Positions 17,041 through 39,400 of a stretch of DNA of 64,000 nt are shown here, one piece after another. Position 1 is the stretch's first letter. Every line of letters begins with the position of its first letter. Made by a program: the position numbers and the translations under genes. Origin of the DNA: Macrostomum hystrix (taxonomy: Eukaryota; Animalia; Platyhelminthes). Location of the stretch: the NCBI GenBank assembly GCA_950097015.1, contig CATNEN010000007.1, positions 682,001 through 746,000 of the forward strand, in the 5' to 3' direction. The notes beneath the pieces are model-generated. The model was not told where the DNA came from, made no database searches, and saw only the letters and a program-made list of their open reading frames with translations.

Positions 17041-17597
17041 TGTTTTTACACAAAAAATGGGATGAAAATCACCAGTTTATTTGGGGGAATAAAGTCAACT
17101 TCTGCGCATAAACTTTGCCTTCTTTCCTCCTCAGCTAATGTCGACCCTAGCCCCATCTGCACAATGATATACCAGCTCCATATTCCCAATCACACAGCAC
17201 AACTGGAACTTACACAATAAATATACAAGCGTGGGGCGAGTGTCTCTGGCTCACACATTCCTGTCACCAACTCCTCAACTTCCCTCAGTCTCCTGCATTA
17301 GTGAAAAGTAGGATTAGGGCGCACACATAGCAGAAGTTGGGAGAAGCAGACTGGCTGACAGACGAATCGATGCACTGAAAGCTACGAGCTAGAATGAAAA
17401 CAGAGAGGCGGACTCGGGGGGTGGGGTGGCTGTTCGCCCTACGATACCAGAGACAGAATACTAACGCTGAGTACACACACACAAACAGCTGCTGCTGATG
17501 CAATCGTGATTCAATCATACATATTAATGAGATAATCTGGGCTAAGAAATATAGATATGAAAATAAGTTATGCCTTCTATCTGATTCCGGACATTAA

Positions 17598-17815
17598 GGG
17601 ATAAGTGGCAGAGCAGTCTAACCAATTTGCCTCCCGCACAGAAGCTCCTGAGCTCGAATCCGCGGCGAGGCCGCATCGATTTTGGGAGCGCGACCGCGGA
17701 GAGATGGCTTGGTGGCTTCTCGTGCAATTTACGCGCAAAAGGACCGACCCCCAGGGCACAATGAGAGTGTATACTGCCTGACAATGAGAATGTCATGGCT
17801 GATGTACACACCTGT
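17598..17815 (+). mobile_element. tRNA-derived SINE, family 1 (head and body)
   Basis: A-box-like tggcagagcagt and B-box-like gagctcgaatcc; body shared with the copy at 7975-8250. Confidence 0.65.
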
Positions 17816-20250
17816 GACAGGTAGATAACCTGAACAGACAGGCAGATAACCTGAACAGACAGGCAGATAACCTGAAGAGACAGGCAGATGACCTGAACAG
17901 ACAGGCAGATGACCTGAAGAGACAGGCAGATGACCTGAAGAGACAGGTAGATGACCTGAACAGACAGGCAGATGACCTGAAGAGACAGGCAGATGATCTG
18001 AACAGACAGGCAGATGACCTGAAGAGACAGGTAGATGACCTGAACAGACAGGCAGATAACCTGAAGAGACAGGCAGATGACCTGAAGAGACAGGCAGATG
18101 ACCTGAAGAGACAGGTAGATGACCTGAAGAGACAGGTAGATGACCTGAACAGACAGGTAGATGACCTGAACAGACAGGCAGATGACCTGAAGAGACAGGC
18201 AGATAACCTGAAGAGACAGGCAGATGACCTGAACAGACAGGCAGATGACCTGAACAGACAGGCAGATGACCTGAACAGACAGGCAGATGACCTGAACAGA
18301 CAGGCAGATGACCTGAACAGACAGGCAGATGACCTGAACAGACAGGCAGATGACCTGAACAGACAGGCAGATGACCTGAAGAGACAGGCAGATGACCTGA
18401 AGAGACAGGCAGATAACCTGAAGAGACAGGTAGATGACCTGAACAGACAGGCAGATGACCTGAAGAGACAGGCAGATAACCTGAAGAGACAGGCAGATGA
18501 CCTGAAGAGACAGGCAAATGACCTGAAGAGACAGGTAGATGACCTGAACAGACAGGCAGATAACCTGAACAGACAGGCAGATAACCTGAAGAGACAGGCA
18601 GATGACCTGAACAGACAGGCAGATGACCTGAAGAGACAGGCAGATGACCTGAAGAGACAGGCAGATAACCTGAACAGACAGGCAGATAACCTGAACAGAC
18701 AGGCAGATGACCTGAAGAGACAGGCAGATGACCTGAAGAGACAGGCAGATGACCTGAAGAGACAGGCAGATGACCTGAAGAGACAGGTAGATGACCTGAA
18801 CAGACAGGCAGATGACCTGAAGAGACAGGTAGATGACCTGAACAGACAGGCAGATGACCTGAAGAGACAGGCAGATAACCTGAAGAGACAGGCAGATGAC
18901 CTGAACAGACAGGCAGATGACCTGAACAGACAGGCAGATGACCTGAACAGACAGGCAGATGACCTGAACAGACAGGCAGATAACCTGAACAGACAGGCAG
19001 ATAACCTGAACAGACAGGCAGATGACCTGAACAGACAGGCAGATGACCTGAAGAGACAGGTAGATGACCTGAACAGACAGGCAGATGACCTGAAGAGACA
19101 GGCAGATAACCTGAAGAGACAGGCAGATGACCTGAAGAGACAGGCAGATGACCTGAAGAGACAGGCAGATAACCTGAACAGACAGGCAGATAACCTGAAG
19201 AGACAGGCAGATGACCTGAACAGACAGGCAGATGACCTGAACAGACAGGCAGATAACCTGAACAGACAGGCAGATAACCTGAAGAGACAGGCAGATGACC
19301 TGAACAGACAGGCAGATAACCTGAAGAGACAGGCAGATGACCTGAACAGACAGGCAGATGACCTGAAGAGACAGGCAGATGACCTGAAGAGACAGGCAGA
19401 TGACCTGAAGAGACAGGTAGTAGACCTGAACAGACAGGCAGATGACCTGAAGAGACAGGCAGATGACCTGAAGAGACAGGCAGATGACCTGAAGAGACAG
19501 GCAGATGACCTGAAGAGACAGGTAGATGACCTGAACAGACAGGCAGATGACCTGAAGAGACAGGTAGATGACCTGAACAGACAGGCAGATGACCTGAAGA
19601 GACAGGCAGATAACCTGAAGAGACAGGCAGATGACCTGAACAGACAGGCAGATGACCTGAACAGACAGGCAGATGACCTGAACAGACAGGCAGATGACCT
19701 GAACAGACAGGCAGATAACCTGAACAGACAGGCAGATAACCTGAACAGACAGGCAGATGACCTGAACAGACAGGCAGATGACCTGAAGAGACAGGTAGAT
19801 GACCTGAACAGACAGGCAGATGACCTGAAGAGACAGGCAGATAACCTGAAGAGACAGGCAGATGACCTGAAGAGACAGGCAGATGACCTGAAGAGACAGG
19901 CAGATAACCTGAACAGACAGGCAGATAACCTGAAGAGACAGGCAGATGACCTGAACAGACAGGCAGATGACCTGAACAGACAGGCAGATGACCTGAAGAG
20001 ACAGGCAGATGACCTGAAGAGACAGGCAGATAACCTGAACAGACAGGCAGATAACCTGAAGAGACAGGCAGATGACCTGAACAGACAGGCAGATGACCTG
20101 AACAGACAGGCAGATAACCTGAACAGACAGGCAGATAACCTGAAGAGACAGGCAGATGACCTGAACAGACAGGCAGATAACCTGAAGAGACAGGCAGATG
20201 ACCTGAACAGACAGGCAGATGACCTGAAGAGACAGGCAGATGACCTGAAC
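17816..20250. repeat. 21-bp minisatellite (agacaggcagatgacctgaa[g/c]), about 116 copies, no net frameshift
   Basis: Read directly; variants at mainly three positions. The minus-strand ORFs 17542..20313 and 17793..20327 are repeat translations. Confidence 0.96.
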
Positions 20251-20760
20251 AACTCTGTGAGTATTACAAGCGCAGGTACAATTGGAGAACACTGAAAGCA
20301 GCAATAACTGCAAATATCAGAACTCACCTACAAGTAATTAAAATAATTGATGCCGTATGAGAAGATAAGTCAAATCAATTGCATCTAATAAAACCGACGG
20401 AAATTAATATCCTATATCCATGCAATTATCGTTAAAAGCCGTGAGATTGACTCGCATTTTCCTACAAGATCATATATGAACACTCAATAAGATAAGCACA
20501 AACTAAGAGTACAAACACATATAATTGAAAGAAGAAAGATTTAGCCAGCTGATTAGTAAAGTGAAATCGATTTTCTTATTTAGTTTATTATTTTATTGAT
20601 TATTATAAGATTAACGCAGTTTAGGAAACTGACGCACAAAGAAATTCATTTTAAATTGGCATCTATAACTCGCCCATTAGAAAGCCGATAGTCAATAGCC
20701 ATTGGTGTCAATTGTTGCTGTCTTAATTCCAATTCGTCAAGCATTCCCTGTAGTTCAAAA

Positions 20761-23700
20761 TTAGCCCACAATTTCTCCGCGATTGTCGCCGACATTGTAG
20801 GCCACCCAGTCGGCTGCGATGGGCGCGGACAGCAGCCGCGGACCGAGGTCGAAGGCGTCAACCACCGTCCGGCTGTCGATAGTCTGGCACAGGCGGCGAG
20901 CGGTTTTAGACACGGCCGCACCCTGCTCCGCTGTGAGCAGGCCGCTGCTCAGAATCGAGCCCAGGTGACGCTCCACACAGTTGAGCAGGTACAGATGCCG
21001 GACACTGTTCAGCAGGCCGCGGGTTGGCGAGTCGGACGGCAGATCACCGACGGCCTTGGCGACTGCCTCGGCTGTCAGGCGGTAGCCGTACATCCTGGCG
21101 GCCTCCTGAACCTCGTCGCTGAGCTCGCACATCCAGGCCTGGAATAGGCCGGCCGCGCCGGCTTTGCCCAGCGCTGTTACCAAGGCAACGTTGAGTCTAG
21201 TCTCGTGAGAGGCCAGCACGGTTTCTAGGAAAGCTGGATCCTCCACAGCTTTGGCGTCCTTGGATAACTGGGCAGGTTTGGAGGGCTTGAAGCTGGAGAG
21301 GCGCTCTTTGGCCACCTTCTGCATGAGGACAGAGTTGTCGCCTTCGGCTGTCAGCGCTGCGTGGGCGTTGCCAATGTAGGTGCCGAATCTGGGACCGGGT
21401 GGTAATCAGAGAAATTCATATACCACAATGATCCCCTCTTTACTAAAGTAGAACTACATATTAAAACAATTGAGTCAATTTTAAAGTAATCCTTCCTGAA
21501 AAGTGTTTGCAGTGAAATCCACGGGAATTCGCAGGAAGTCCCTGGGAATTCATGGGGAATTCCTGTAAAATACATGGGAAATCCCAGTGAATTCATGAGA
21601 AATCCCAGTGACTTCATGAGAAATCCCAGTGAATTCATGAGAAATCCCAGTGACTTCATGAGAAATCCCAGTGAATTCATGAGAAATCCCAGTGACTTCA
21701 TGAGAAATCCCTGTGAATTCTTGGGGAATACATGGGAAATTCCTGTGAATTCATGAGAAATCCGTGTGAATTCATGAGAAATCCGTGTGAATTCATGAGA
21801 ACTCCCTGTGAATTCATGAGAAATCCCTGTGAATTCATGAGATCCCTGGGGATTCGTTGGAAATCCCTAATAACTCTCAGAAAAGCTCTGGGTATCTAGG
21901 GAAATTCAGGAGAAATCGTAATATCGTTAACATTTATTGCAGACAAAGACATCAAATAAAATTACTTCTAGGAAAATGAACTCAAACCCACCTGTTGCAG
22001 GCCAGGTAACCCTGACCGCCGCATCTCTCCCTGGTGATGCTGGCCACTCGTTCCATATGCCAGCCGCACAGAGGCTTAATGGCGCAGCACATGGTTACTA
22101 ACTCGGCGTGCTCAGCCTCAGTCTTGGCCGTGGCGAAGGCGTCCTTGACTCGATTCAGGCCAATATTGAAGGCCACTGTGTCAGCCAGTAGTGGAACTAG
22201 TGCACGCTTCTGCAACTCGTAGGTCAATATAGGCGTGTCGGATTTGCCGGTGGGTCCAACTGTTAGCCGGGTGGCGGCGTAGCGCAGGGCAATGGCCATG
22301 CAGGCCTTGGCACCGCCCATGCACATGCTGGCAATGCAGATGCGCCCGGACAGCAGCTGGTCCGCCACCGTCAGGAAGCGGGCCCGGTTGCTCTTGATTG
22401 AAGTGCTGAAATTGCCCCGCTCGTCTATGTCGCTGTACCTGGAGAGGGAAAAGACGCGCGAGACAATGCGATTGCCGAATTGTATATCGAATTCTTACAT
22501 CAAAATAGACTCTGAATGATGATGGGTGAACAGTGAATGATGATGGGTGAACAGTGAATGATGATGGGTGAACAGTGAATGATGATGGGTAAACAGTGAA
22601 TGATGATAGGTGAACAGTGAATGATGATTGGTGAACAGTGAATGATGATAGGTGAACAGTGAATGATGATTGGTGAACAGTGAATGATGATAGGTGAACA
22701 GTGAATGATGATAGGTGAACAGTGAATGATGATAGGTGAACAGTGAATGATGATAGGTGAACAGTGAATGATGATAGGTGAACAGTGAATGATGATAGGT
22801 GAACAGTGAATGATGATGGGTGAACAGTGAATGATGATGGGTGAACAGTGAATGATGATGGGTGAACAGTGAATGATGATGGGTGAACAGTGAATGATGA
22901 TTGGTGAACAGTGAATGATGATAGGTGAACAGTGAATGATGATTGGTGAACAGTGAATGATGATAGGTGAACAGTGAATGATGATTGGTGAACAGTGAAT
23001 GATGATTGGTGAACAGTGAATGATGATTGGTGAACAGTGAATGAATGACTATTCTAGCAGAATTATCCCTACCTATTCAGCAGGTTCTCCCTTGGCACTC
23101 TGATGGAGTCGAAGGACAGCTTGGCATTGTCCACTCCGTTGAGTCCCATGCGGACGCCCATGTCGTGAATGTGCACTCCGGGCATGGGTTTGAGCTGGTC
23201 GTCGCGAATCCTGGCAAGAATGCCGTGCACTCCGCACTGCTGACCGTTGACTCGCAGCTGGGCGAAGACAATGCAGTGCTTGGCGTGCAGGGCGCCGTTG
23301 GTGATCCAATACTTCTGCGACAACGGCGTCGGACTGTTGATGACAAACTCGCCGGCCTTGGCGTCGTACTCGGCCGTTGTCTCCATCTCGACGGCGTTGT
23401 TGCCGTAGCCCAGCTCGGTTAGGCCGAAGCAGCCGACATCGTCGAGGCTGTCGATGCCAGCCAGAAGGCGGCTGTGATGCCGCTCCGTGCCCAGCTTCAG
23501 CACCGTGCCACCGAACAGGTTGAATTGCACCTGCGACAGGGAGGAGCGGTGATCTCAACCCACAATGAACTCACGTAGAACTAACTCACAATCCACCCAC
23601 ACTGAACTCACTGAAAGGCGCTCAGTACAGACAGGCACCAGTACAGACAGGCACCAGTACAGACAGGCACCAGTACAGACAGGCACCAGTACAGACAGGC

Positions 23701-24194
23701 ACCAGTACAGACAGGCACCCAGTAAAGATAGGCACCAGTACAGACAGACACCCAGTACAGACAGACACCCAGTACAGACAGACACCCAGTACAGACAGAC
23801 ACCCAGTACAGACAGTACGCCGGTTAGTCCGGTGGTTATATATCGGACTAACCGTCATCTTGGTGGTCATTGCCGGGTCCGTGACAGCGGCCAGCTCGTG
23901 AGCGGCGAAGATCCTGTGCGGATTGTTCTGAAAGTCCAGCACTGAGATGAAGCCGGCCCGGCAGACCTTCTTGAGTCGCTGGTAGGACAGCTCGCGATCT
24001 TCGTCTAGGCTGACATTGTAGCGAGGCTGAAACAGCGGATCGGCCGCCATGAAGGCCTTCATCTTGTCGCGCATGTCATGATTGTCGTGATCCAGGACTC
24101 GCTTCAGTTCGGCGGTGGCGCCGGACGAGTACAGGCGATGCGGCAGCTGCGTGAAGCTGAGGCTATGGCTGACTCGCGTGAGGCGATGCATCAT
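20761..24194 (-). CDS. Acyl-CoA oxidase family flavoprotein; exons 24194-23853, 23530-23073, 22438-21992, 21388-20761 (624 aa)
   Basis: Motifs [83 protein letters not shown] and [12 protein letters not shown]. All GT-AG junctions are in frame. Exact ortholog unclear. Confidence 0.92.
21570..21850. repeat. 21-bp minisatellite (gaaatcccagtgaattcatga) in ACOX intron 3
   Basis: Read directly. Confidence 0.9.
22513..23045. repeat. 21-bp minisatellite (gaatgatgatgggtgaacagt), about 25 copies, ACOX intron 2
   Basis: Read directly. Confidence 0.95.
23620..23815. repeat. 16/17-bp minisatellite (cagtacagacaggcac) in ACOX intron 1
   Basis: Read directly. Confidence 0.9.
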
Positions 24195-24219
24195 CTTGAA
24201 ATGTTTGGGAATGAGGATC

Positions 24220-24820
24220 TGGAAATGAGAAACCATTGAAGTTAGGGAATTCGGAATGAGAAACCATTGAAGTTAGGGAATTCGGAATGAGAAACCATTG
24301 AAGTTAGGGAATTCGGAATGAGAAACCATTGAAGTTAGGGATTCGGGAATGAGAAACCATTGAAGTTAGGGATCTGGAAATGAGAAACCATTGAAGTTAG
24401 GGATCTGGAAATGAGAAATCATTGAAGTTAGGGATTTCGGAATGAGAAACCATTGAAGTTAGGGATCTGGAAATGAGAAACCATTGAAGTTAGGGATCTG
24501 GAAATGAGAAATCATTGAAGTTAGGGATTTCGGAATGAGAAACCATTGAAGTTAGGGATTTCGGAATGAGAAACCATTGAAGTTAGGGATCTGGAAATGA
24601 GAAACCATTGAAGTTAGGGATTTCGGAATGAGAAACCATTGAAGTTAGGGATTTGGGAATGAGAAATCATTGAAGTTAGGGATCTGGGATTGAGGAACCA
24701 TCGAAGTTAGGGATCTGGGATTGAGAAACCATCGAAGTTAGGGATTTGGGAATGAGAAATCATTGAAGTTAGGGATCTGGGATTGAGAAACTAATGAAGT
24801 TAGGGATCTGGGAATGAGAA
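24220..24820. repeat. 31-bp minisatellite (gaaaccattgaagttagggatctggaaatga), about 19 copies, directly upstream of the ACOX start
   Basis: Read directly. Confidence 0.93.
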
Positions 24821-25185
24821 ATAAAGAAAAAGTAATGAAAAAAACCGTTAAACAATTTGAATTTTGTAAATATATATTGTCAGTTTAAACCAGTGACAAG
24901 AATATCACTCGCGTGTATCCATACGAGTACAATAGTTCGTAATTCTACAATACTATGAATTCTGCATTTAAATCAACAGTTTTGTTAGATAATTTTTTTT
25001 CTTGGGTAAAGAGTGTTCAAAATGTAGTGTCGCTACATACGGATGCAAGATTTATAAATAATAAATTAATTCTTCAGTTACAAATATGGTAAAAAAGTAA
25101 CAACTTTCACACAAACTACTAGCGCAGCGCTTGATTAAGTAGTAAGTGACAGGCATGTGCATGCTCAAAGGAAAATCATAAACTT

Positions 25186-28100
25186 TCAATTGTCCACAAG
25201 CTTCTCCTTGGCCTGCTGCTTGGCCCACTGAATCCTTTTGCCAGTCGAGTCGCAACTCGACACGCCAGACTGTGAGCCGCCGTCGCCTAGCAACCGGATT
25301 CTAGCCGCCTCATCCTCGGCCTGATGCTCGGGATCCAGCATTTGCAGTCGAGTCAGCAGGCTGGACAGCTGCATCGGAGCCTGGTTGGAATGCACCTGCG
25401 GGGCATTCAGGTGGCTTATAACTTTCTAAGAAATGCAGCCGAAGTTTTCCAAGAAATGTAGCCAAAGTTTTCCAAGAATTATAGCCAAGGTTTTCCAAAA
25501 AATCTAGCCAAAGTTTTCTAAGAAATGTAGCCAAATTTTTCCAAGAAACCTAGCTAAAGTTTTTCCAAGAAATCTATTCAATGTTTTTATAAGAAATGTA
25601 GCCATTTTTTTCCAAGAAATCTAGCCAAAGTTTTCTAAGAAATTTTGCCATTTTTTCTTAGAAATTTAGTTAAAGTTCTCTAAAAATTCTAGCCAAAGTT
25701 TTCTAAGAAATCTAGCCAAAGTTTTCTAAGAAATCTAGCCAAAGTTTTCTAAGAAATCTAGCCAAAGTTTTCTAAGAAATCTAGCCAAAGTTTTCTAAGA
25801 AATCTAGCCAAAGTTTTCTAAGAAATCTAGCCAAAGTATTCCTAGAACTCCAGACAAAAAATACTTTTCCAAGAAATGTTGCAAAAGTTTTCCTACAACT
25901 ATTGCTAAAGAATTCATGGCAATCAAATTTCCTGGAAACACTTTTCTAGAAATCATAAAATTATATATATATATATAGATTTACAGCTTCATAACAAAGT
26001 TTAAGAAAAAAAACTTTTTCTTTTTCTGGTTTTAATTTTTTATGATCTGCTATTTGAATAATGAAATTTCTGAAAAACAAGACATTTCCTAGAATCGCGC
26101 TACTGTCCAGAAATCCAGCCTTATTAATTTTCTAGAAATGTCAATGCAGTTTGTAAGAAATTTTGCCGTTACCGCTTTTAATTTTTGAAGTCCGGAGCCC
26201 TCAATGCCTAATATTATTGACAAATGTTAGAAAAACAAACCTTAGCCCATCGTTTTCTTCGCTCCAAATCGCCGAATTGTTTATAATTGGCCAGAGTTTC
26301 CGCAACCTCTGCGTCCAACGAGTTGCCGCCAATCGCGGTGAGGTTGCGCAGCTCGGCGTGGTACACCACCAGCAGCCAGAGCGGCAGGCTGGCGAACAGG
26401 CCGGCACTGGCGCCGTCCGTCCCGACTATCAGTGGCACAGCGCAGCGAAGTCGGGTCAGGCGAGTCCGGCATCGGTGCTGAAGCAGAAGGCGGCACAGGT
26501 GGGCCACCCATTCGGCGCGGTCGAACACCGGCACCGGCTCGCTGACGGGATAGTCGCAGCCTAGCTCAACCGCCAGCCTGCCGCAAGCCACGGACTCAGG
26601 ATCCCAGTAGCCCCAGCACCAGGCTGGACAGTCGGCAGACAGGCGAGTCAGCAACAGGCTGGAGTCCGCCGCTGAGCGACTCAGTAGGGCCAGGTTGCCG
26701 CGTAGGCTGGTGGCAGAGTTTGGTGGCAGATCAAACGGGTCAATGTCGACAACCTGCGGATGTTAAGGGATGGGAGATTCACCGAAATATCCCACATTTG
26801 CAGGCTAACAACAGATGACACCTGCCCGAATTGGCCAGATGTGCAGCCGACAGCACAGCCGCAGCTATTGCGCGGCGCATCTGAAGGCTGTGTACGGCTG
26901 TTCAGTCCATGGACCCAACACTCAATTACCTCAGCTGATGCTGGTACCTTGTCTAGCTAAAGGACACGAATTGTTCCTGTTTAGTCGCGAATCGAACCCA
27001 CGACCTTTAAGTCGTGAGTCCCACGCTTAAACCAAGAGGCTAAAACCTCTTAGAAATAAATTAAGCAACAATGACAAGGTCCCCTGGGCGCAAAATATTA
27101 GGCGCAGCTCAATCACAATCACAATACCATCCTCTGTCAACCAATCAGTCACCACCCCACAGCTGTTAGCATTCAAGCGCTGCCAAAAATGTTCTGGGGG
27201 GCCCGCCTCCCTGGGCATAAAAACGGGCGGCAAAATGGCTTGGCAGTCCTACTGTTAAGCAGCCATACAAGGACGCGCATATACAGATTAAAATTTTTTA
27301 ATTTTCTTGTACTTCTTTAAGGAACATATTTTGGACAAATTTTATACAATTATTTTGTAAGGTCTTCAAGGAAAACGCAAAATTTACAGTTTATTACCCT
27401 TAATTTACATAAATTACTTTTATAAACAGCAGCTTCGTTTCACAGCTCTTCATGTCTAGTTTATTTATTTATGTAAATTCTGATTGCGAGATTTTGCAAT
27501 GCAGCAGAGAATTCTTGCTCTTCTAGTGGTTACTTTGTGCTCTCGTAAAGTCAAACTTTTTAGTTTTTTCAATATAGTCACAAACAAAATGTTCAATTTA
27601 TATTGATTCTTCTTATTAGCCAAAGGGATTTAACAGAACCAAGTCTGTAGCAAATAGCAATGAAACTCAGTTTGGTTGGGACCAAATCTGTGGCCTCGCA
27701 GCTGAATCGATTCAAGGGGGGGGGGAAATAGTGTGGCCTTTCTACTGTTAAGACAGCTCTGAACTGCTGACATCTTCATATAATTCAACTTATATAGGAA
27801 TGAGCTTTATAAAGTCGCTATCTTCATTTTATATTTGCCTCCTGTCAATATTGTTGCATACAAAAATATGGTGTGCACTGAGTATCTGTGTGTGCGTTTC
27901 CTAGAATTACTTTACTTATAATAGAATAAGATACGAATATCTACCTGGTCGTACTGCAGCCCCTCAGCCTCGCCAGCAGCAGCAGCAGCAGCAGCAGCAC
28001 TGTTATTGTCCAGGCACCTGAGCAGCACCACCTGGCCAGATAATGGCGTCCTAGACAACAGGTGACCCTCCGATCCAAAGGCGAGCAGTTCAGCCCAATA

Positions 28101-31100
28101 CACCTGAGGCAGGAGCGAGGCTCCGTCGCCATTTGCTGGCGGAAGGTGCGACTCTATCAGACGCCAATTGGCTCGCCAGACATCCGATGTTAGCGACCTT
28201 TAAGCAAACGGAATATTTGGCTACAGAATAACAGACTCCCTGACAATGAGTACTGACAGACTCCCTGACAATGAGTACTGACAGACTCCCTGACAATGAG
28301 TACTGACAGACTCCCTGACAATGAGTACTGACAGACTCCCTGACAATGAGTACTGACAGACTCCCTGACAATGAGTACTGACAGACTCCCTGACAATGAG
28401 TACTGACAGACTCACTTGACAATGAGTACTGACAGACTCACTGACACTATATATGTACTCTGATACTAAATACGTACTCTGACACATCCGGACAATTTTA
28501 AGACAGACCCACCGAACAACAGCCTGATAGAAGGCCTCCTGACTGCCATCCCGTAGAGGGGCACTAAAAGCGTTCCTCAGTCTATTCGAATAGTCATTAG
28601 CGGTGGCTTTGAGTCCTTTAAACAAACGTTTAGCGGCTAGTCGTCTGGCGTGCGACTGCAATAGCAGGGCGCATGACTGCAGCCTGGCTCTGGTGCGATA
28701 CATGCCCAGAATATGACGATAGTGACAGAACACATCCTTGCGGCCGACTAACAGCGGACCGTCTGAAGTTATTAATTGCGAGATATTGCTTATAATTAAA
28801 TATGCTTTGTTTAAATAATACCAGGGAGCTTATAGTCACTACTGGAGTGGTCTGGAGTTCGAATTTCAGCGCGATGAAAAATCGATTAATGCAAGACACT
28901 CAATACATGGTTTTTTAGTTCAGAAAACTGTACTGGAACGAACATTTGTTTAATTTAATTTAAAAAAGGAGAGATAATTATAATAACAAAGACCAATCAG
29001 GTTTTAGTACTTGTAACGCTAAGTGTTTCAGTTACTCAGATTAGTTTTTACGCCTCACCGTAAGTTTGCTTAGCAACCCGCTTGATATACTGTCCAGCCT
29101 TAAAACAGTCCTGACTGCATTCTTTGTCAATACCGACTTGGCAAGCACCCAGCTGACCAGCCAGAGTGTACGGCAGTACAGCGTCGGAGAATGTAACCAA
29201 GAATCGATGCCTGGAGGCCGAGCATTGAAACAAGTTGCTAGCTTTAACAGCAGCCAAGTGGCAAGCTCGAAGACGCATCAGAGCCTGTGAAGACGGCAGC
29301 GATAACGAAGGCAATCGATCGATGAACAGCAACTTGACGTCAACGCACTCCGAAGACGCTGTCAAATTTAACTGTTCAGGATCAGTCAGCAACGAAGTCA
29401 ACAATGTTAAACTGTGAGTAGTCAGCGTTTTTGATGCCGAAATCTGCTGTTGCTGCTTTAAAGTCAGCGATGATTGGGCAAGGAACACGCTGGCTGCTTC
29501 CGCCTCGTATGGCGCTAGAGAAGACAGGCTTGCGAGGCGGTAGGTTCGACTGCCCAGCCAATGGCTGACTTCGAGCAATGTCTAGATTGTCGTGGCGGAT
29601 GGAGAGGGCAATATATCTAATACATTGACAAAATAATAATAAATCGATATTTAATAGACACAAGTTAAACAATGCGAGAGAGCTACTACTATTAAGTCTT
29701 CTTAAGACTCGTACAGGTTTGCACGTGTAATTCGTAAAACTGCATTTTAAGGATTATGCAGGGCCACCTTCAAGGTCAATCGAAAATCTTAAAAGCCAAC
29801 GAATCCTGGCTTCGAGATGTGCGGAACAGTTTTTCACTTGTTGGGCATATCGACATCAAGGCTACAACCTAGTTGCAGACAAATATTATTGAATTCAGGA
29901 CAAACAATTACGAGTCCCAGTAACAAACCTGCTCAGTTCCACCGCCTTTGACTTTAGAAATTCGAAAGACTTCCAACGCAGAAGTTCCAGCCGCAGACGA
30001 TTTCTTAGCAGCTATGACAGGATCTCCGCGGCCAAAAGCCACACCAAGAAGAGTGGGCGCCTTTGCGCTGCCCAAAGAACGATAAGCGTCGATAAGACCG
30101 ACTGAAGGAGCAGATTTTTCTAAAGCCTCCACGTAGCCTCTAGTGGCTAGAGCTTGGGAGTCTACTTTAATTGCGTCTTTGTCCAATAAAGCCAAGGGGG
30201 TTGATGTAATCAAACGAGCGCGAAGGCAGCCAAACAAGTCGCATAGATAGTTGAATTCGAAGCTCATCGCTTCACGTGCGGGTGTCGCAGCTATTGGCAT
30301 TGATGCACTCGCATCGACCTGACCACGCAACAAGTCGGTCGGCCCAATCAGCAGCGTCATGCGACCAACTGCGCCACTGCCTTGGGTGACAGTTTCGCAC
30401 AATCGACAAGCGGCTAATCTTTGATTAATCCGGTCAACTACAAACTGCACTAGCCTGCGATAGATGGCTCTAATCATGCCGGCTAGAGCGGCATTACACT
30501 CTTCTGCGGTGCGGTTTCTCAGCGCCTTTCTGTGACCGTCGCGTAGTACTTCGTATCTGTGTTCAGACGAGACAGATGTTAAGTGACGAAGTCTAATTTT
30601 ATTTTACAGAACGATTTGAACAGAAAACTCAAGCACATACCTAATAGTGACCTCCCGCATTAGCGAATCCATCTCAAGACCCAGCAGTCGAGCTGCCCTC
30701 TCCAGATTCTCGTGCCGTTCAAACTGCACGCATTTCTTTGGCTTGCGCGAATCTGGCACAACTCTGACAAGGCGCAGATTTAGCGCAGCCGCAGCGCAAC
30801 GATAAATGAAGTCCAGATTTTCATCGGAGAAGTTAAACACTTCGACGAGGCGGCGAGCTACGTTAATATGACGTAAGCGATCCTCCGATTCCAGCGTAGC
30901 AAAGGCAGGCGGAAAAGCCGTTGAGAGCGCCACTTCGGCATCGTCAAGATAATATTCAGCCCTGGCGGACTCATTGGCATGCTCCATCAGCGAGTAGAAG
31001 AAGCAAAATGCGGTGAAATCTTCCGCTTCTAATTCTGAACGGCTTAGAACGCCGTAGCCCATTAGCCAGAGAAGATCGTATTTGATGCTAGTAAGATCGC

Positions 31101-31695
31101 CATTGTCATTGAAACTGGCACGCAGCATTGTCACCGAATGATTGTCGAGAACAAGACGATTGTCTAGCTTACGATAGACGCAGGTGAACGCTTGCACTAA
31201 CTCTAGGCTAGCTTGAACCAATGGTCGGGCGGACAATATTGGAGCGTCCTTAGCAACTAGTTGGACTAGCCTCTCTACGACATCCAAATCGTAGGCACAA
31301 ATCAGCAGGGGACGCGTGGTTAGCAACAGGCTGGGATCGGCTTTGCTGTACAACTGACTCTTGGCGCAGGCGTAAAAGTTGGTAATTGTTGGCGCATTGC
31401 AGCAAGGATACCAGGCGCAACTCTTTGGAACATCCGCATCTGGCTCCGAATTTGAAGTTGAGTCGGCTTCATCGTGAGATAAGTTGCCAAGCAACAGCGA
31501 TTCGCCGCACCATTGCGGCGAATCAAATTCGGCATCATTAGAAGTGAGCATCAACTGAAGAAGCTGCTCCTCCGTGCGCCAGTCGCCAAGCTCAAGGATG
31601 TCCCGTTGGAAATTGCCAACAGTAGTCATGCTGCCTAGCACTTTCTCAGTAGCAGGTGAAGGACGCACAAGAAATTCGTTCTCACGAGTAGCGAT
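25186..31695 (-). CDS. Highly divergent myosin-like protein (degenerate motor domain, IQ motif, unassigned tail); exons 31695-30641, 30556-29929, 29581-29059, 28762-28513, 28197-27945, 26753-26241, 25395-25186 (3432 nt, in frame)
   Basis: Collinear myosin landmarks: LVQASLELVQAF, FCFFYSLM (FHIFYQLL), FNFSDENLDFIYRCAAAALNL (LGFS.EE...I...LAAILHL), LERAARLLGL, MIRAIYRRLVQFVVDRINQRL (LAKALYSRLFDWLVxRIN), VSHWLGSRTY (IxHYAGxVxY), LLVGRKDVF (YQxGKTKVF) and IQ-like LQSHARRLAAKR. Seven exons splice in frame. Confidence 0.8.
25430..25850. repeat. 23-bp minisatellite (ctagccaaagttttctaagaaat) in the last intron of the myosin-like gene
   Basis: Read directly. Confidence 0.88.
26815..27050 (-). mobile_element. 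tRNA-derived SINE, family 2
   Basis: Minus strand has A-box-like tagcctcttgg and B box gggttcgattc, then cagctgaggtaatt...gtccatggactgaac shared with 14750-14822 and 61575-61738. Confidence 0.6.
28230..28445. repeat. 25-bp minisatellite (ctccctgacaatgagtactgacaga), intronic
   Basis: Read directly; fills the intron between exons 28513 and 28197. Confidence 0.92.
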
Positions 31696-32624
31696 CTAAA
31701 CTGGCGCCAATCTTTATATGCGGGCAAACTAAATCGCAGTTCAGTAAAATTTACAGACGCACAAGATACTAACCAGAGCACCCGAAAGAAGACAGAGAGA
31801 GACAGTGTGTATTACCCACGGGAATATTTCTTTAACACCAGATAAGATACCCTATAGGCTAGATTATTCTGCTGTCAAAGTCTATGCGAACAATCTTTCT
31901 GATACAAAAAAATGATAGGAATCGTTAAGTAACTTACAGACTATTAATAATTCTGACACGAATAGGGTGGGTGCGACCTAAAAATGCGAATAATACTACT
32001 TTTAGTCCAGCTGTGTAACCAAGTAGTATTTTTGTACTTTTCTTGCACAGGCCTTAAATATGATTCCTTAAAATGAGACTAGACTCAAAATGGATTAAAT
32101 AAAAAGATATAAACCCTTTTTATTGCCCTGTGATGACACAAAAAGCGAGTTTCAATTACGCAAAGCATATTTACTTTATATTCTCACAGTAAGACTAAGG
32201 CATCGTTTTGGCAAACCATAAAAGAAATGTTCAGAATTCTAGCAAGTTCTTGGTAGATTATACAATTATCAAGAAAGTCTTGCACAGGCAACAGCTATTG
32301 CATGTGGCGGCAGGAATTCGGACTAAGTAACAAAAGCAACGGATGAAACCATTTGCCAAGACAATAATTTTACATAACCAAGGCCACATCCGAATAGCAC
32401 AGGAATTATGAATTATGACTACTAGTGCATTATATTATGAGTAGCCAGAGCTATAGAAAAAAGTGCAGCACTTTTCATTACAAAAAGTAAAAAACAAGAA
32501 TCTGAAAATCTGTCTCTAAACCAGATACTTTCATTATATATGCTATAAAAGGAGTGCAGCCGCTGTTCCTAAAAAAACTAGAAATTAATGAAAATTGAAA
32601 GGTTGAGAGGGTGTAGGGTAAGAA

Positions 32625-33300
32625 TTGTAGTAGGTACAGGGTAGGAATTGTAGTAGGTACAGGGTAGGAATTGTAGTAGGTACAGGGTAGGAATTGTAGT
32701 AGGTACAGGGTAAGAATTGGAGTAGGTACAGGGTAAGAATTGGAGTAGGTACAGGGTAGGAATTGTAGTAGGTACAGGGTTAGAAATGTAGTAGGTACAG
32801 AGTTAGAAATGTAGTAGGTACAGGGTTAGAAATGGAGTAGGTACAGGGTTAGAAATGTAGTAGGTACAGGGTTAGAAATGTAGTAGGTACAGGGTAAGAA
32901 TTGGAGTAGGTACAGGGTAAGAATTGGAGTAGGTACAGGGTAAGAAATGTAGTAGGTACAGGGTTAGAAATGTAGTAGGTACAGGGTTAGAAATGTAGTA
33001 GGTACAGGGTTAGAAATGTAGTAGGTACAGGGTAAGAAATGTAGTAGGTACAGGGTTAGAAATGTAGTAGGTACAGGGTTAGAAATGTAGTAGGTACAGG
33101 GTTAGAAATGGAGTAGGTACAGGGTAAGAATTGGAGTAGGTACAGGGTAAGAATTGGAGTAGGTACAGGGTAAGAATTGGAGTAGGCACAGGGTAAGAAT
33201 TGGAGTAGGTACAGGGTAAGAAATGTAGTAGGTACAGGGTAAGAAATGTAGTAGGCACAGGGTAAGAAATGTAGTAGGTACAGGGTTAGAAATGTAGTTA
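32625..33300. repeat. 23-bp minisatellite (gtaggtacagggttagaaatgta), about 29 copies, between COG5 and the myosin-like gene
   Basis: Read directly. Confidence 0.93.
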
Positions 33301-36400: not shown

Positions 36401-39400
36401 GCTTCAGCTTTGCGACAGACGAACTGCACAGTCTTGAGCACATTCTTGGCAATCTTTAGCAGCAGATCCTGGTCAACCTGGGTGAAGGTCAACTCGGAGG
36501 TCATGGCTTCGACAATGCGACGAATCTCCGACTCGCTGTTTAGCGAACGCTGACCGCCGCTGAACATGGCGTCCACCGGATCGAATAGGCGACTGAGGGA
36601 CCTGGGCGGAGGACAGGGCGTGACTGGCTTGGAGCTGAGAAAAAATCGCAGATTTTAGCTAATATTTTACTTCATACTAGCGCAATATAGCGAAACAGAC
36701 AAATAAACATTTATGCATCCATACACAATTCATGACCAAGACCAATCTAAATCCAAGACAAATCTAGAACCAAGACCAATTCAGAACCAAGACAAATCCA
36801 GAACCAACACATTTCCAAAACATAGACCTTTCTAAAACAAAGAACAATCTTGCGCCAAGACCAATCTAAAACCAAGACCTTTCCAAAACCAAGACCTTTC
36901 CAAAACCAAAACCTTTCCAAAACCAAGACTAATCCAAAACAAAGACCTACAAAAAAACAAAGAGCAATCTAAAACCAAGACCAATCCAAAACGAAGACTA
37001 ATCTATAAAGACTAATCCAAAAAGCCTATCTCAAACCAAGATCGATCTAAAACCAAGACCAGTGACCGAACCTGGACAGATAGGCAGCCTCAAAGCTGGC
37101 CAGATGCGCCCTGCCAAGCGGTGGCAGCTCTTCATCAACCGCTGCCAGCCTAGCCGTCAGCTCATTCGACGATTTCAATAGTCTCGGGTATTCGCCCTCA
37201 AACGCGTGCTTTAAGAATGCGGAAGCGCCGGCAGCCGTTGACAGACTGTCGCGCAGACAGTCGGAGAGCCAGTCGGCGAAGGCAGACGGGCTGATGGCAT
37301 CGGCTGCGGCGGTGGACAGCAGGTCCGATAGCGGTCGCTGCGTGTTGGGATCTCGCTTCTTGGCTAGTATTCGGCGCAGGCTGGCCAGGAACTGAGCCCC
37401 AGAAATGGCCTCCTCGTTCAAAGCGTCCAGGCCGGACCAGAGGGCCTGCGAGTAGGCCGCTGATTGGCCCGCCGGAAGGTTGGCGCGCCCTGGATGGCCG
37501 CCGCTGCCGCTCCTGCAGAGTCCGGGTTGGCGCGAGAGTTTAAGCGTCAAGTTTACAACATCAAGCTCACGATTGTCGAGATTTCCGATCCCTAGAAACT
37601 GGGATTTCCAATTCCTAAAAATTGGAAATGTTTACAACATCAAGCTCACGATTGCCGGGATTTCCGATCCCTAAAAATCCGGGATTTCCAATCCCAAAAA
37701 CGGGGATTTCCGATCCCTTAAAACAAGGACTTCCAATTCCTAAAAATCCGGGATGTCCTATCACTAAAACTGTGATCTACCACCCCTCAAACACTCTTAC
37801 TATTATCTTATAATATATAACATTCTTACACTCCAGACCCGGTAGCCGGGTGCCCAGATCCTCCTAGAAAGGGCGTTTTCTGCATCAGCGCCGACATGTC
37901 CAGCGCTGAGGCGACTCGGTCACGCAGGTCGGACCGGACCCGGCCGGCCAGGTCAATTATGCAGTCGTCCAATCTGCCCAGGCAGAAAACTGCGTGCAGG
38001 CAGGCGGCCAGTTGCGGATGCGGGCCAGAGTGCGCCCCTAGCGACGGTTGCTAAGGAAAAAATGAATACAGTAATTTATAAAGGCAAGTTTTATTTGACT
38101 GTAATGTCTTCCCCTAAAATTAGCTTTCCAACACAATACCACTGGAAACGTCGAAGGTAAGAAAATAGGAAACCTTATGGCAATTGTAACTATGCAGATA
38201 TAATCCGCATAGTAACTGTAACTTATAACAAGAATATCCCTCTAACAACGTTATCTTTGTAGATGTTTTACATAGATCATCGTCACGATGGGTAAATATT
38301 ACGACTAAATCTCCTTACCAACGGTAGCTAAGCTAAATCGGTTACAACCCCTTAGCAACGGTAACGCGCGTTAATCAGCTACAGCTACATTCCTTTGGTA
38401 ACGGTATCTCTTCTCATTAAAATCCCCTCAGAAACAGCAGCTAAAATTATCAGCAAAAGCCGCTCACCAAACCAGACGCCGCTCCGACGCCCCTTGCATC
38501 GGCTAGCAGTGCTGTGGCCCTGGCCTCAGCGGCATCTCTCCACCTGGCGAACCGCCTGTGCTCCCGCTCCAGAGCGTGCACGCCGCGCCAATCCAAGCCG
38601 GAGAACTGGTGCGCCAAATCGCCCAGCGTCTGCGCCACCTTGCCCAGCTGGTCCTCCGGCAGACTGGCCGCCTCCTCGGCGCCGGAGCCCGACTGCGCCG
38701 GCAGCTTCTTGGCCAGGGCGAAGATGCGGCTGGCGCGTCGAAGAAAATCGCAGGCGGCCTGCACCCGGCGCAGGTGAGTGACCCGCTGCTCCAATCGGCC
38801 GTAGGGTTCGCCAATTCGAGCTCGAATCTTTTGCAAGCCTAGCAACAGGGCGCCAGTGCGAGATTGCACCACTGACAGCACCGATTCCAGGGTGTCGATG
38901 CCAGTGGCGCGAGACAGCAGGTCTTTGTGATGCCGGACAACGTGACGCTCGATGTCGCTTTCGAGTCTTTGTTAACATTTTAAGAACTAAGATTTAATAG
39001 CAATAATATATTACAATTTGCATAGCAACGGTTGCTAAGGCTTACTAAAATCCATCACAGTAACTTCTCTAAGCTTAACAGTACAAAAATATAATAGCAA
39101 CGCAGAAAAAATTATTGTAGTGAGAAATTGCTTAACTTATTTATTGGTAATAGTCAGCAGAGAATAAGAAATTACTCTTGATAATTTCAAATGCTTCTTT
39201 GACTGAGATTCGAACACGTGACCTTTCGGTCAGGTTTCCAAAGCCCTAACGACTGGTGCACAATCTGGCTATTGTTAAAACGATTGCTAAAGTCTAATAG
39301 CTAGGCGAAGCACAATAAGATTAAGAACTCACTTAGCAATGCAGGCGTCAATCTTTTCAATAACCTCGCTGACGACTTGCGTCTGCAGTACAGTGATAGC

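Follow-up and report, generated by a model that had tools for sequence, protein, structure and literature searches.

A probable myosin-derived protein without ATP-site motifs in the flatworm Macrostomum hystrix

The P-loop and the switch elements are established as necessary for hydrolysis in P-loop NTPases and in myosins, and the amide of the switch II glycine contacts the gamma-phosphate. Motor domains are nevertheless kept as nucleotide-independent binding or scaffold modules in the motor-like domains of chitin synthases and in dead kinesins such as Costal2. Among the myosins, class XVIII (Myo18) has a recognisable full-length motor domain, a P-loop-like sequence and a coiled-coil tail, with KE or PDZ N-terminal extensions in some isoforms. 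The class XVIII myosins lack ATPase motor activity and are structural or scaffolding partners of actomyosin (PMC7900500). The present analysis concerns a minus-strand gene of Macrostomum hystrix that lies in a window of 64,000 nucleotides (positions 682,001 to 746,000 of contig CATNEN010000007.1, assembly GCA_950097015.1), and all coordinates below are positions within this window. The gene encodes 1121 residues, and its product is a myosin-derived, expressed and constrained protein which lacks the ATP-site motifs and probably serves as a nucleotide-independent structural or adaptor protein.

The locus had been pointed out in an earlier reading of the letters by themselves (the sequence-only reading), whose core was a lineage-specific, myosin-derived protein with the P-loop and both switches lost, and not a pseudogene. 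The homology tests, the regular-expression searches, the RNA and the substitution rates described below all agree with that core.

The myosin-derived core and the ATP-site motifs

The part of the protein that is detectably similar to myosin heads is the following.

30418..31113 (-): detectable myosin-head core, residues ~173-376, from the upper 50K up to the helix before switch II; it spans intron 1.

Full-length Pfam and structure tests were run on the orthologue from Macrostomum lignano, designated P0001, and the exons of the window were scanned separately. The Pfam profile Myosin_head (PF00063) scores 43 bits on full-length P0001, against a gathering cut-off of 33.3 (E 2.6e-11), over profile positions 190-357 only, and the myosin-head likeness claimed in the sequence-only reading therefore lies above the cut-off in the orthologue. 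The same profile gives 22.3 bits on exon 1 of the window (E 4.6e-5, profile 185-307) and 13.8 bits on exon 2 (E 0.017, profile 319-357, collinear with exon 1), neither exon alone reaching 33.3 bits. Among the 43 PDB chains listed at E <= 1, 38 are myosins, including all the stronger ones (best E 5e-4 to 6e-4); they span classes II, VI, I and XV, without discriminating among the classes.

Five viral myosins from IMG/VR, fetched through a DNA pattern encoding GESGAGKTE and scoring 348-405 bits in Pfam, were used as reference heads. When compared with one of these viral myosins by Smith-Waterman alignment and shuffling, residues 173-376 give z = 8.6. Alignment of the family with the viral myosins by hhalign returns residues 296-376 only (E 0.016, probability 2.8%), and a hidden Markov model (HMM) built from the viral myosins recognises residues 306-378 only. 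These matches indicate that the protein descends from myosin, the homology of the core being significant.

The contigs that supplied the viral references (L006, L009, L010, L011 and L017) are of giant-virus type. Their heads are complete, with canonical P-loop, switch I and switch II, and two of them have an IQ motif.

The ATP-site motifs were sought by regular expressions over the whole of three proteins, namely the window protein, P0001 and a second M. lignano copy, P0004. For the P-loop, neither G....GK[ST], nor the relaxed [AG]....[AG]K[ST], nor GK[ST] occurs in any of them; for switch I, SSR and N.N[ST][ST] are both absent throughout; and for switch II, there is no D..G.E anywhere. Since the canonical motifs are absent from the entire proteins, the loss is independent of alignment. 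The loss of the P-loop and of both switches, as first proposed, is thus found in all three proteins, and the alternative that the motifs had merely been misaligned is excluded, no canonical motif having been found at any position.

The positions where the motifs would be expected are less certain, and the candidates are these.

31273..31311 (-): P-loop option A, PLLICAYDLDVVE, residues 107-119; the earlier placement, on a spacing argument.
31234..31257 (-): P-loop option B, VAKDAPIL, residues 125-132; placed by MAFFT with the five viral myosin heads; fully conserved.
31099..31176 (-): switch I region, residues 152-177; LDNHSVTML (31123-31149) and FNDNG (from 31113).
30331..30354 (-): switch II option 1, LLIGPTDL, residues 398-405; the earlier placement, after a conserved hydrophobic strand.
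30256..30273 (-): switch II option 2, EAMSFE, residues 425-430; placed by MAFFT against the viral myosins.

All strings that had been quoted for the motifs and the converter are present, at residues 107-119 (PLLICAYDLDVVE), 161-169 (LDNHSVTML), 398-405 (LLIGPTDL) and 719-725 (VGRKDVF), and the long minus-strand open reading frames 31695-30607, 30603-29911, 29581-29051 and 28829-28224 contain all of them. As for the positions assigned to the motifs, that of switch I agrees with MAFFT, which aligns NHNSSR to DNHSVT, but the P-loop and switch II each have a second candidate. At the low-confidence edge of the HMMER alignment, the glycine of RFG falls at FNDNG (residues 173-177; ASFNDNG), about 10 residues beyond the MAFFT site.

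P-loop option A falls about 4 residues short of a canonical loop, has no G-rich loop, and lies where conservation drops to 0.50-0.55, the flanks having 0.80-0.85. It stands 47 residues from switch I, close to the canonical spacing (46 in Dictyostelium myosin II); with this site as the P-loop, the conserved WCGESLLLGN falls on the Y-x-G-x-x-L-x-x-x-N-P motif. LLIGPTDL, which reads FLIGPTHL in M. lignano, is plausibly spaced from the HMM-aligned helix ending INQRL. EAMSFE reads DALNFE in M. lignano, so that F and E are retained and the essential glycine is replaced by S or N. MAFFT also moves the equivalent of FxRCIxPN, and the automated and manual alignments disagree on its place. On the basis of spacing and strand conservation, the earlier placements are somewhat favoured over those of MAFFT.

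Transcription, distribution and selection

The gene comprises seven coding exons on the minus strand (31629..25186), with no internal stop and with GT..AG at all boundaries. The first in-frame ATG is at 31629, and an in-frame stop lies upstream at 31696-31698.

31630..31678 (-): 5' untranslated region, minimum extent; the contigs of the transcript reach to 31671-31678.
30641..31629 (-): coding exon 1, residues 1-330; N-terminal part, both P-loop candidates, switch I region and start of the detectable core.
29929..30556 (-): coding exon 2, residues 330-539; last part of the detectable core, with the two switch II candidates.
29059..29581 (-): coding exon 3, residues 540-714; presumed lower 50K, SH helix and converter; from RNA junctions.
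28513..28762 (-): coding exon 4, residues 714-797; head end (VGRKDVF) and one IQ; from RNA junctions, with the cut shifted by +2.
27945..28197 (-): coding exon 5, residues 798-881; tail, including a CAG-encoded poly-Ala run.
26241..26753 (-): coding exon 6, residues 882-1052; tail; donor at 26241 placed from the orthologue P0001.
25186..25395 (-): coding exon 7, residues 1053-1121 and stop; placed from the alignment with P0001 and the AG/GT sites.

Contigs of public RNA-derived runs were aligned to positions 27800-32400 of the window at 99% or more, a span which takes in exons 1 to 5. The contigs skip 30557-30640, 29582-29928, 28763-29058 and 28198-28512 (after the +2 shift), which are exactly GT..AG on the minus strand, and their loose 3' ends map to 26722-26751, which gives a fifth GT..AG intron at 26754-27944. 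Exon 1 is unbroken in the contigs of samples X4, X5 and X6 and ends in a GT donor. The junctions 30641/30556 and 29929/29581 are seen in three samples; all in all, the splice joints occur in three samples of one study, and one joint (30641/30556, in X1) also in a run of a second study. Because the contigs skip introns at GT..AG, they are derived from RNA, and the gene is real, transcribed and correctly spliced. At the 3' end, the open frame of exon 6 itself reaches a stop at ~26217, and the orthologue indicates instead that splicing leads from a donor at 26241 to a final exon at 25395-25186.

The intact frame of seven exons described in the sequence-only reading is borne out, with 1121 codons against the about 1140 then given. 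The span then given, 28513-31695, has to be extended: it covers exons 1-4 only (797 codons, head and IQ), and three more exons reach to 25186. A possible extra exon within 29582-29928 is not part of the spliced transcripts, which skip the whole stretch.

In sample X4, contigs of low depth also run collinearly with the genome within intron 2 (29674-29855) and just upstream of the transcript start (31664-31984), and two samples have contigs from ~32130 (32127-32400) that continue past 32400. These contigs may come from RNA that is not spliced, from another start further upstream or from the 3' end of a neighbouring gene.

The closest relative of the window protein is P0001 (PAA82636.1, UniProt A0A267G9H5, BOX15_Mlig023546g3) of M. 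lignano, with a phmmer E of 1e-146, and it is the only real match in a full phmmer scan of 1.84 billion representative proteins. It is annotated as a 'hypothetical protein' and carries the automatic UniProt label 'Myosin motor domain-containing protein'. The second M. lignano copy, P0004 (PAA74664.1), is 98% identical to it. Over 1107 aligned residues, the window protein and P0001 are 72% identical without a frameshift, and the M. lignano copies keep intact frames of 1113 and 1114 codons. A word search with the full-length protein in 5.8e9 clusters returned only the cluster of P0001 itself; a word-based protein search with exon 1 gave no match, the length window of that search excluding full-length kin. 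Two bacterial phmmer matches (P0002 and P0003) were rejected as spurious, being MBG-repeat proteins in which one stretch of 30 residues was matched many times. The gene is therefore restricted to Macrostomum in the databases searched, the only relatives found being the M. lignano proteins, and the lineage specificity that had been proposed is upheld. A search of the literature found no paper on unconventional myosins of Macrostomum, nor any under the locus tags of the M. lignano copies (Mlig023546 and Mlig034240).

The neighbours of the gene in the window are, on the minus strand, COG5 upstream (~37050-37550; COG5_C E 9e-16) and ACOX downstream (20700-24240; Pfam ACOX E 3e-12). The window and both M. 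lignano loci share the order COG5 - gene - ACOX, all on one strand. With 72% identity and the same gene order, the M. lignano gene is the positional orthologue of the window gene. Five exon boundaries coincide, and both species lack the catalytic motifs; in contrast, an extra intron of ~4.9 kb, located within the exon 6 region of the window and holding an opposite-strand open reading frame, is found in M. lignano only, where the poly-Ala run is lacking. The extra intron (L001:10894-15786 and L002:8414-13321; reading frame of 274-299 aa) is absent from the window, and is possibly a transposon-borne intron gain.

Substitution rates were estimated by the Nei-Gojobori method (NG86). Between the window and M. 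lignano (1107 codons), the non-synonymous rate dN is 0.20 and the synonymous rate dS is 1.77, and their ratio (omega) is 0.11, an approximate value because dS is saturated, which weakens the argument from selection. By region, omega is 0.09 in the head and 0.16 in the tail. The two M. lignano copies, P0001 and P0004, have dN 0.0068, dS 0.017 and omega 0.40, with 17 non-synonymous against 14 synonymous differences between them, where 3:1 would be neutral (binomial P 0.012). The RNA contigs contain nine coding variants, four synonymous and five conservative replacements. Residues 291-370 are the best-conserved stretch (95-100% identical to M. lignano); in the tail, residues 1011-1080 are conserved at 85-95%, and the final ~110 residues rank with the best-conserved parts of the protein. 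These values point to strong purifying selection along the entire protein. Neutral dN/dS together with a lack of expression had been named beforehand as the sign of a pseudogene; the values found are omega ~0.11 and spliced RNA in three samples. The intact frames together with a dN/dS of ~0.11 thus show that a pseudogene is not what the window carries.

Conservation along the protein is lowest (20% identity) at the poly-Ala tract of exon 5, in which a perfect (CAG)8.7 run (plus strand, 27974-27999) encodes eight alanines; M. lignano has no such run.

Introns and intergenic stretches between 20000 and 33000 are full of minisatellites with periods of 16-31 and 8-25 copies (for example at 28231-28446, 25423-25910, 24215-24821, 22513-23044 and 32615-33000), and the intron between exons 4 and 5 consists mostly of a 25-nt repeat. 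A 923-aa open frame at 17542-20313 (-) has no Pfam match and is partly a 21-nt tandem repeat (20000-20251).

Neck, tail and the extent of the head

The end of the head, the neck and the tail are located as follows.

28728..28748 (-): VGRKDVF, residues 719-725; presumed converter end.
28626..28661 (-): IQ motif LQSHARRLAAKR, residues 748-759; found by regular expression.
25189..28190 (-): tail, residues 800-1121; divided by introns into three exons.

The IQ motif of the sequence-only reading is present: a match to the consensus [FILV]Qxxx[RK]xxxx[RK] begins at residue 748 of the window protein (LQSHARRLAAK), and P0001 and P0004 have it likewise. The Pfam IQ profile gives 15.6 bits on the orthologue (E 0.014), below its cut-off of 20.3; in MAFFT the motif aligns with the IQ motifs of the viral myosins, with a Smith-Waterman z of ~3. 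The lysine of VGRKDVF (K722) lies 26 residues ahead of the IQ (L748), a spacing that is 28 in the viral myosin L017 and that matches Dictyostelium myosin II.

Residues 800-1121 of the tail, which is ~370 residues long, have no match in Pfam, NCBIfam or the ESM atlas, and database searches with the tail found no homologue outside this gene. The match of a tail-only search to P0005 (M. lignano UniProt A0A1I8..., 447 aa) was rejected, as this gene model, 100% identical over 17% of the tail query, fuses the last exon of the gene to the neighbouring ACOX and is no homologue. The fusion reflects either a chimeric annotation or transcriptional read-through.

The chances are about even that the gene represents a genus-restricted new myosin class, a 'pseudomyosin', in which the nucleotide pocket would be erased, including a shortened P-loop, while the head, the neck and a novel tail would be kept under strong purifying selection, the former motor domain serving as a nucleotide-independent binding module for actin or a partner gained later. 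The alternative that survives best is that of a very fast-evolving member of a named animal myosin class, whose motor function was lost in the Macrostomum lineage, and it is possible, if rather doubtful. Long-branch genes are hard to place, and pseudo-motor members of named classes are known, e.g. myosin-18 (PMC7900500). However, no tail domain of a known class is detectable, and the PDB matches do not separate classes II, VI, I and XV. This alternative is compatible with a nucleotide-independent structural or adaptor protein, from which it differs in classification only.

A less probable alternative, and an unlikely one, concerns the head itself. According to it, only the upper-50K fragment of ~200 residues is derived from myosin, and the sequence on either side of it (~170 residues N-terminal, ~350 C-terminal) is of new or unrelated origin, the protein being a chimera without a head scaffold. 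Several results favour such a chimera and weigh against a retained head, as the HMM, profile and pairwise tests are silent outside residues 173-376 and the IQ. Thus, Pfam gives no Myosin_head signal on sub-pieces outside residues ~173-376 and no match of any kind on exon 3. Family profiles compared with the PDB give chance matches only (BEN domain, transposase) for the N-terminal (1-200) and C-terminal (376-800) parts. Smith-Waterman shuffling gives z ~0-1 for residues 1-172 and 377-745, and hhalign and the viral-myosin HMM find no similarity outside the core residues. Because no similarity is detected outside residues ~173-376 and the IQ, the motif-by-motif correspondences are positional, and the alignments disagree on the places of the P-loop, switch I, switch II and FxRCIxPN. 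AlphaFold2 models of the orthologue have a predicted local distance difference test score (pLDDT) of 33.9 and a predicted template modelling score of 0.27 for the head (1-800), and a pLDDT of 33.1 for the tail (790-1113). These low pLDDT values arise because the alignment had only three sequences; the Foldseek E-values and template modelling (TM) scores cited below derive from this low-confidence head model. The collinear myosin-head landmarks of the sequence-only reading are accordingly significant over core residues ~173-376, but outside the core they have no HMM or pairwise signal except for the weak IQ.

Other results speak against the chimera. Measured from the N-terminus to the IQ, the protein has the size of a head (~740 residues), and the distances within this region are near expectation: residue 203 corresponds to profile position 190, and the IQ lies 368 residues past profile position 357, where 322 are expected. 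VGRKDVF is at the canonical distance from the IQ. When ESM features are compared, exon 1 scores 0.91 to myosin heads and residues 376-770 of the orthologue score 0.93, 29 of the 30 matches of the latter being C-terminal myosin-head fragments with or without IQ. In Foldseek, the top 50 matches of the head model (pLDDT 33.9) are all myosin motor domains, aligned over 480-640 columns, with E of at least 4e-3 and TM ~0.15. Moreover, exon 1 joins the undetectable N-terminal part and the detectable core in one continuous exon in both species. From these spacings and models, it is likely that the scaffold of the myosin head is retained.

It is very improbable that the protein is still an enzyme, with a nucleotide or phosphate site rebuilt from unorthodox residues such as the VAKDAP segment and the partial switch II DALNFE/EAMSFE. 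The P-loop place given by MAFFT is fully conserved, and its switch II place keeps F and E (and has D in M. lignano). However, a glycine-rich loop and GK[ST] are both missing from the entire proteins, S or N stands in place of the switch II glycine, the serine-serine-arginine of switch I is absent, and the elements lost are those established as necessary for hydrolysis. A transcribed pseudogene or decaying myosin relic, which would fit the loss of all the catalytic motifs and the poor conservation of P-loop option A, has next to no probability and is already contradicted by the intact frame of 1121 codons in 7 exons and the intact M. lignano frames, by a dN/dS of 0.11 with a synonymous excess even between the recent M. 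lignano copies, and by the correct splicing in three samples.

Proposed function and comparison with known systems

Since the protein has no Walker A, SSR or DxxGxE, a conventional myosin ATPase cycle appears impossible, and with the ATP-site motifs absent it is probably a non-motor structural or adaptor protein. In the mechanism proposed, the nucleotide pocket would have been dismantled, and what was once the motor head would bind actin or a new partner as a fixed module. A calmodulin-like light chain would hold the head at the IQ, and the lineage-specific tail would provide a second binding end, so that the protein would act as a tether and not as a motor. The best-conserved residues, 291-370, cover the upper-50K hairpin after an HxGN-like strand, which corresponds to the cardiomyopathy loop at the actin interface in canonical myosins. 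With the peak of conservation on this presumed actin-contact hairpin, nucleotide-independent binding of actin by the head is a reasonable first guess. M. lignano is genetically tractable (RNA interference, transgenesis and in situ hybridisation), and the question of function is therefore directly testable.

Pseudo-motor myosins are already known; in the present one the active site is unusually far degraded, the gene genus-restricted and the tail novel. The scope is limited to one genus, and myosins with disrupted P-loops are already mentioned in census papers. The protein resembles the disrupted motor-fold sequences of the myosin census, in which the sequence is homologous to the motor domain and the functional loops are disrupted. 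Macrostomum is absent from the text and the supplementary species list of the census paper, and, as far as these parts of the source go, the family lies outside its 79 classes and listed orphans.

The likeness to class XVIII is that of a myosin-superfamily protein which, as with Myo18A and Myo18B, would have no ATPase motor activity. In contrast to class XVIII, the motifs are gone altogether here and only a quarter of the Pfam Myosin_head profile is matched; no PDZ or other Myo18-type domain is detected on the orthologue, and the tail is without a match. The protein differs from the myosin-motor chitin synthases in that the Pfam scan of P0001 and of the window exons contains no chitin synthase family, and no other enzymatic domain is attached. 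Kinesins form a different superfamily, and the comparison with Costal2 is one of analogy only.

Pseudo-enzymes that keep a motor scaffold reveal the parts of a motor domain that remain of use once its chemistry is lost. In the present protein the three nucleotide-site motifs are gone, yet omega is ~0.1 on the head as well as on the tail. If the head still binds actin, it would be a natural 'rigor-only', nucleotide-blind tether; if it does not, a motor domain would have been recruited to a new partner. Should the pseudomyosin reading be true, the protein would be an animal counterpart, from the myosin superfamily, of dead kinesins such as Costal2.

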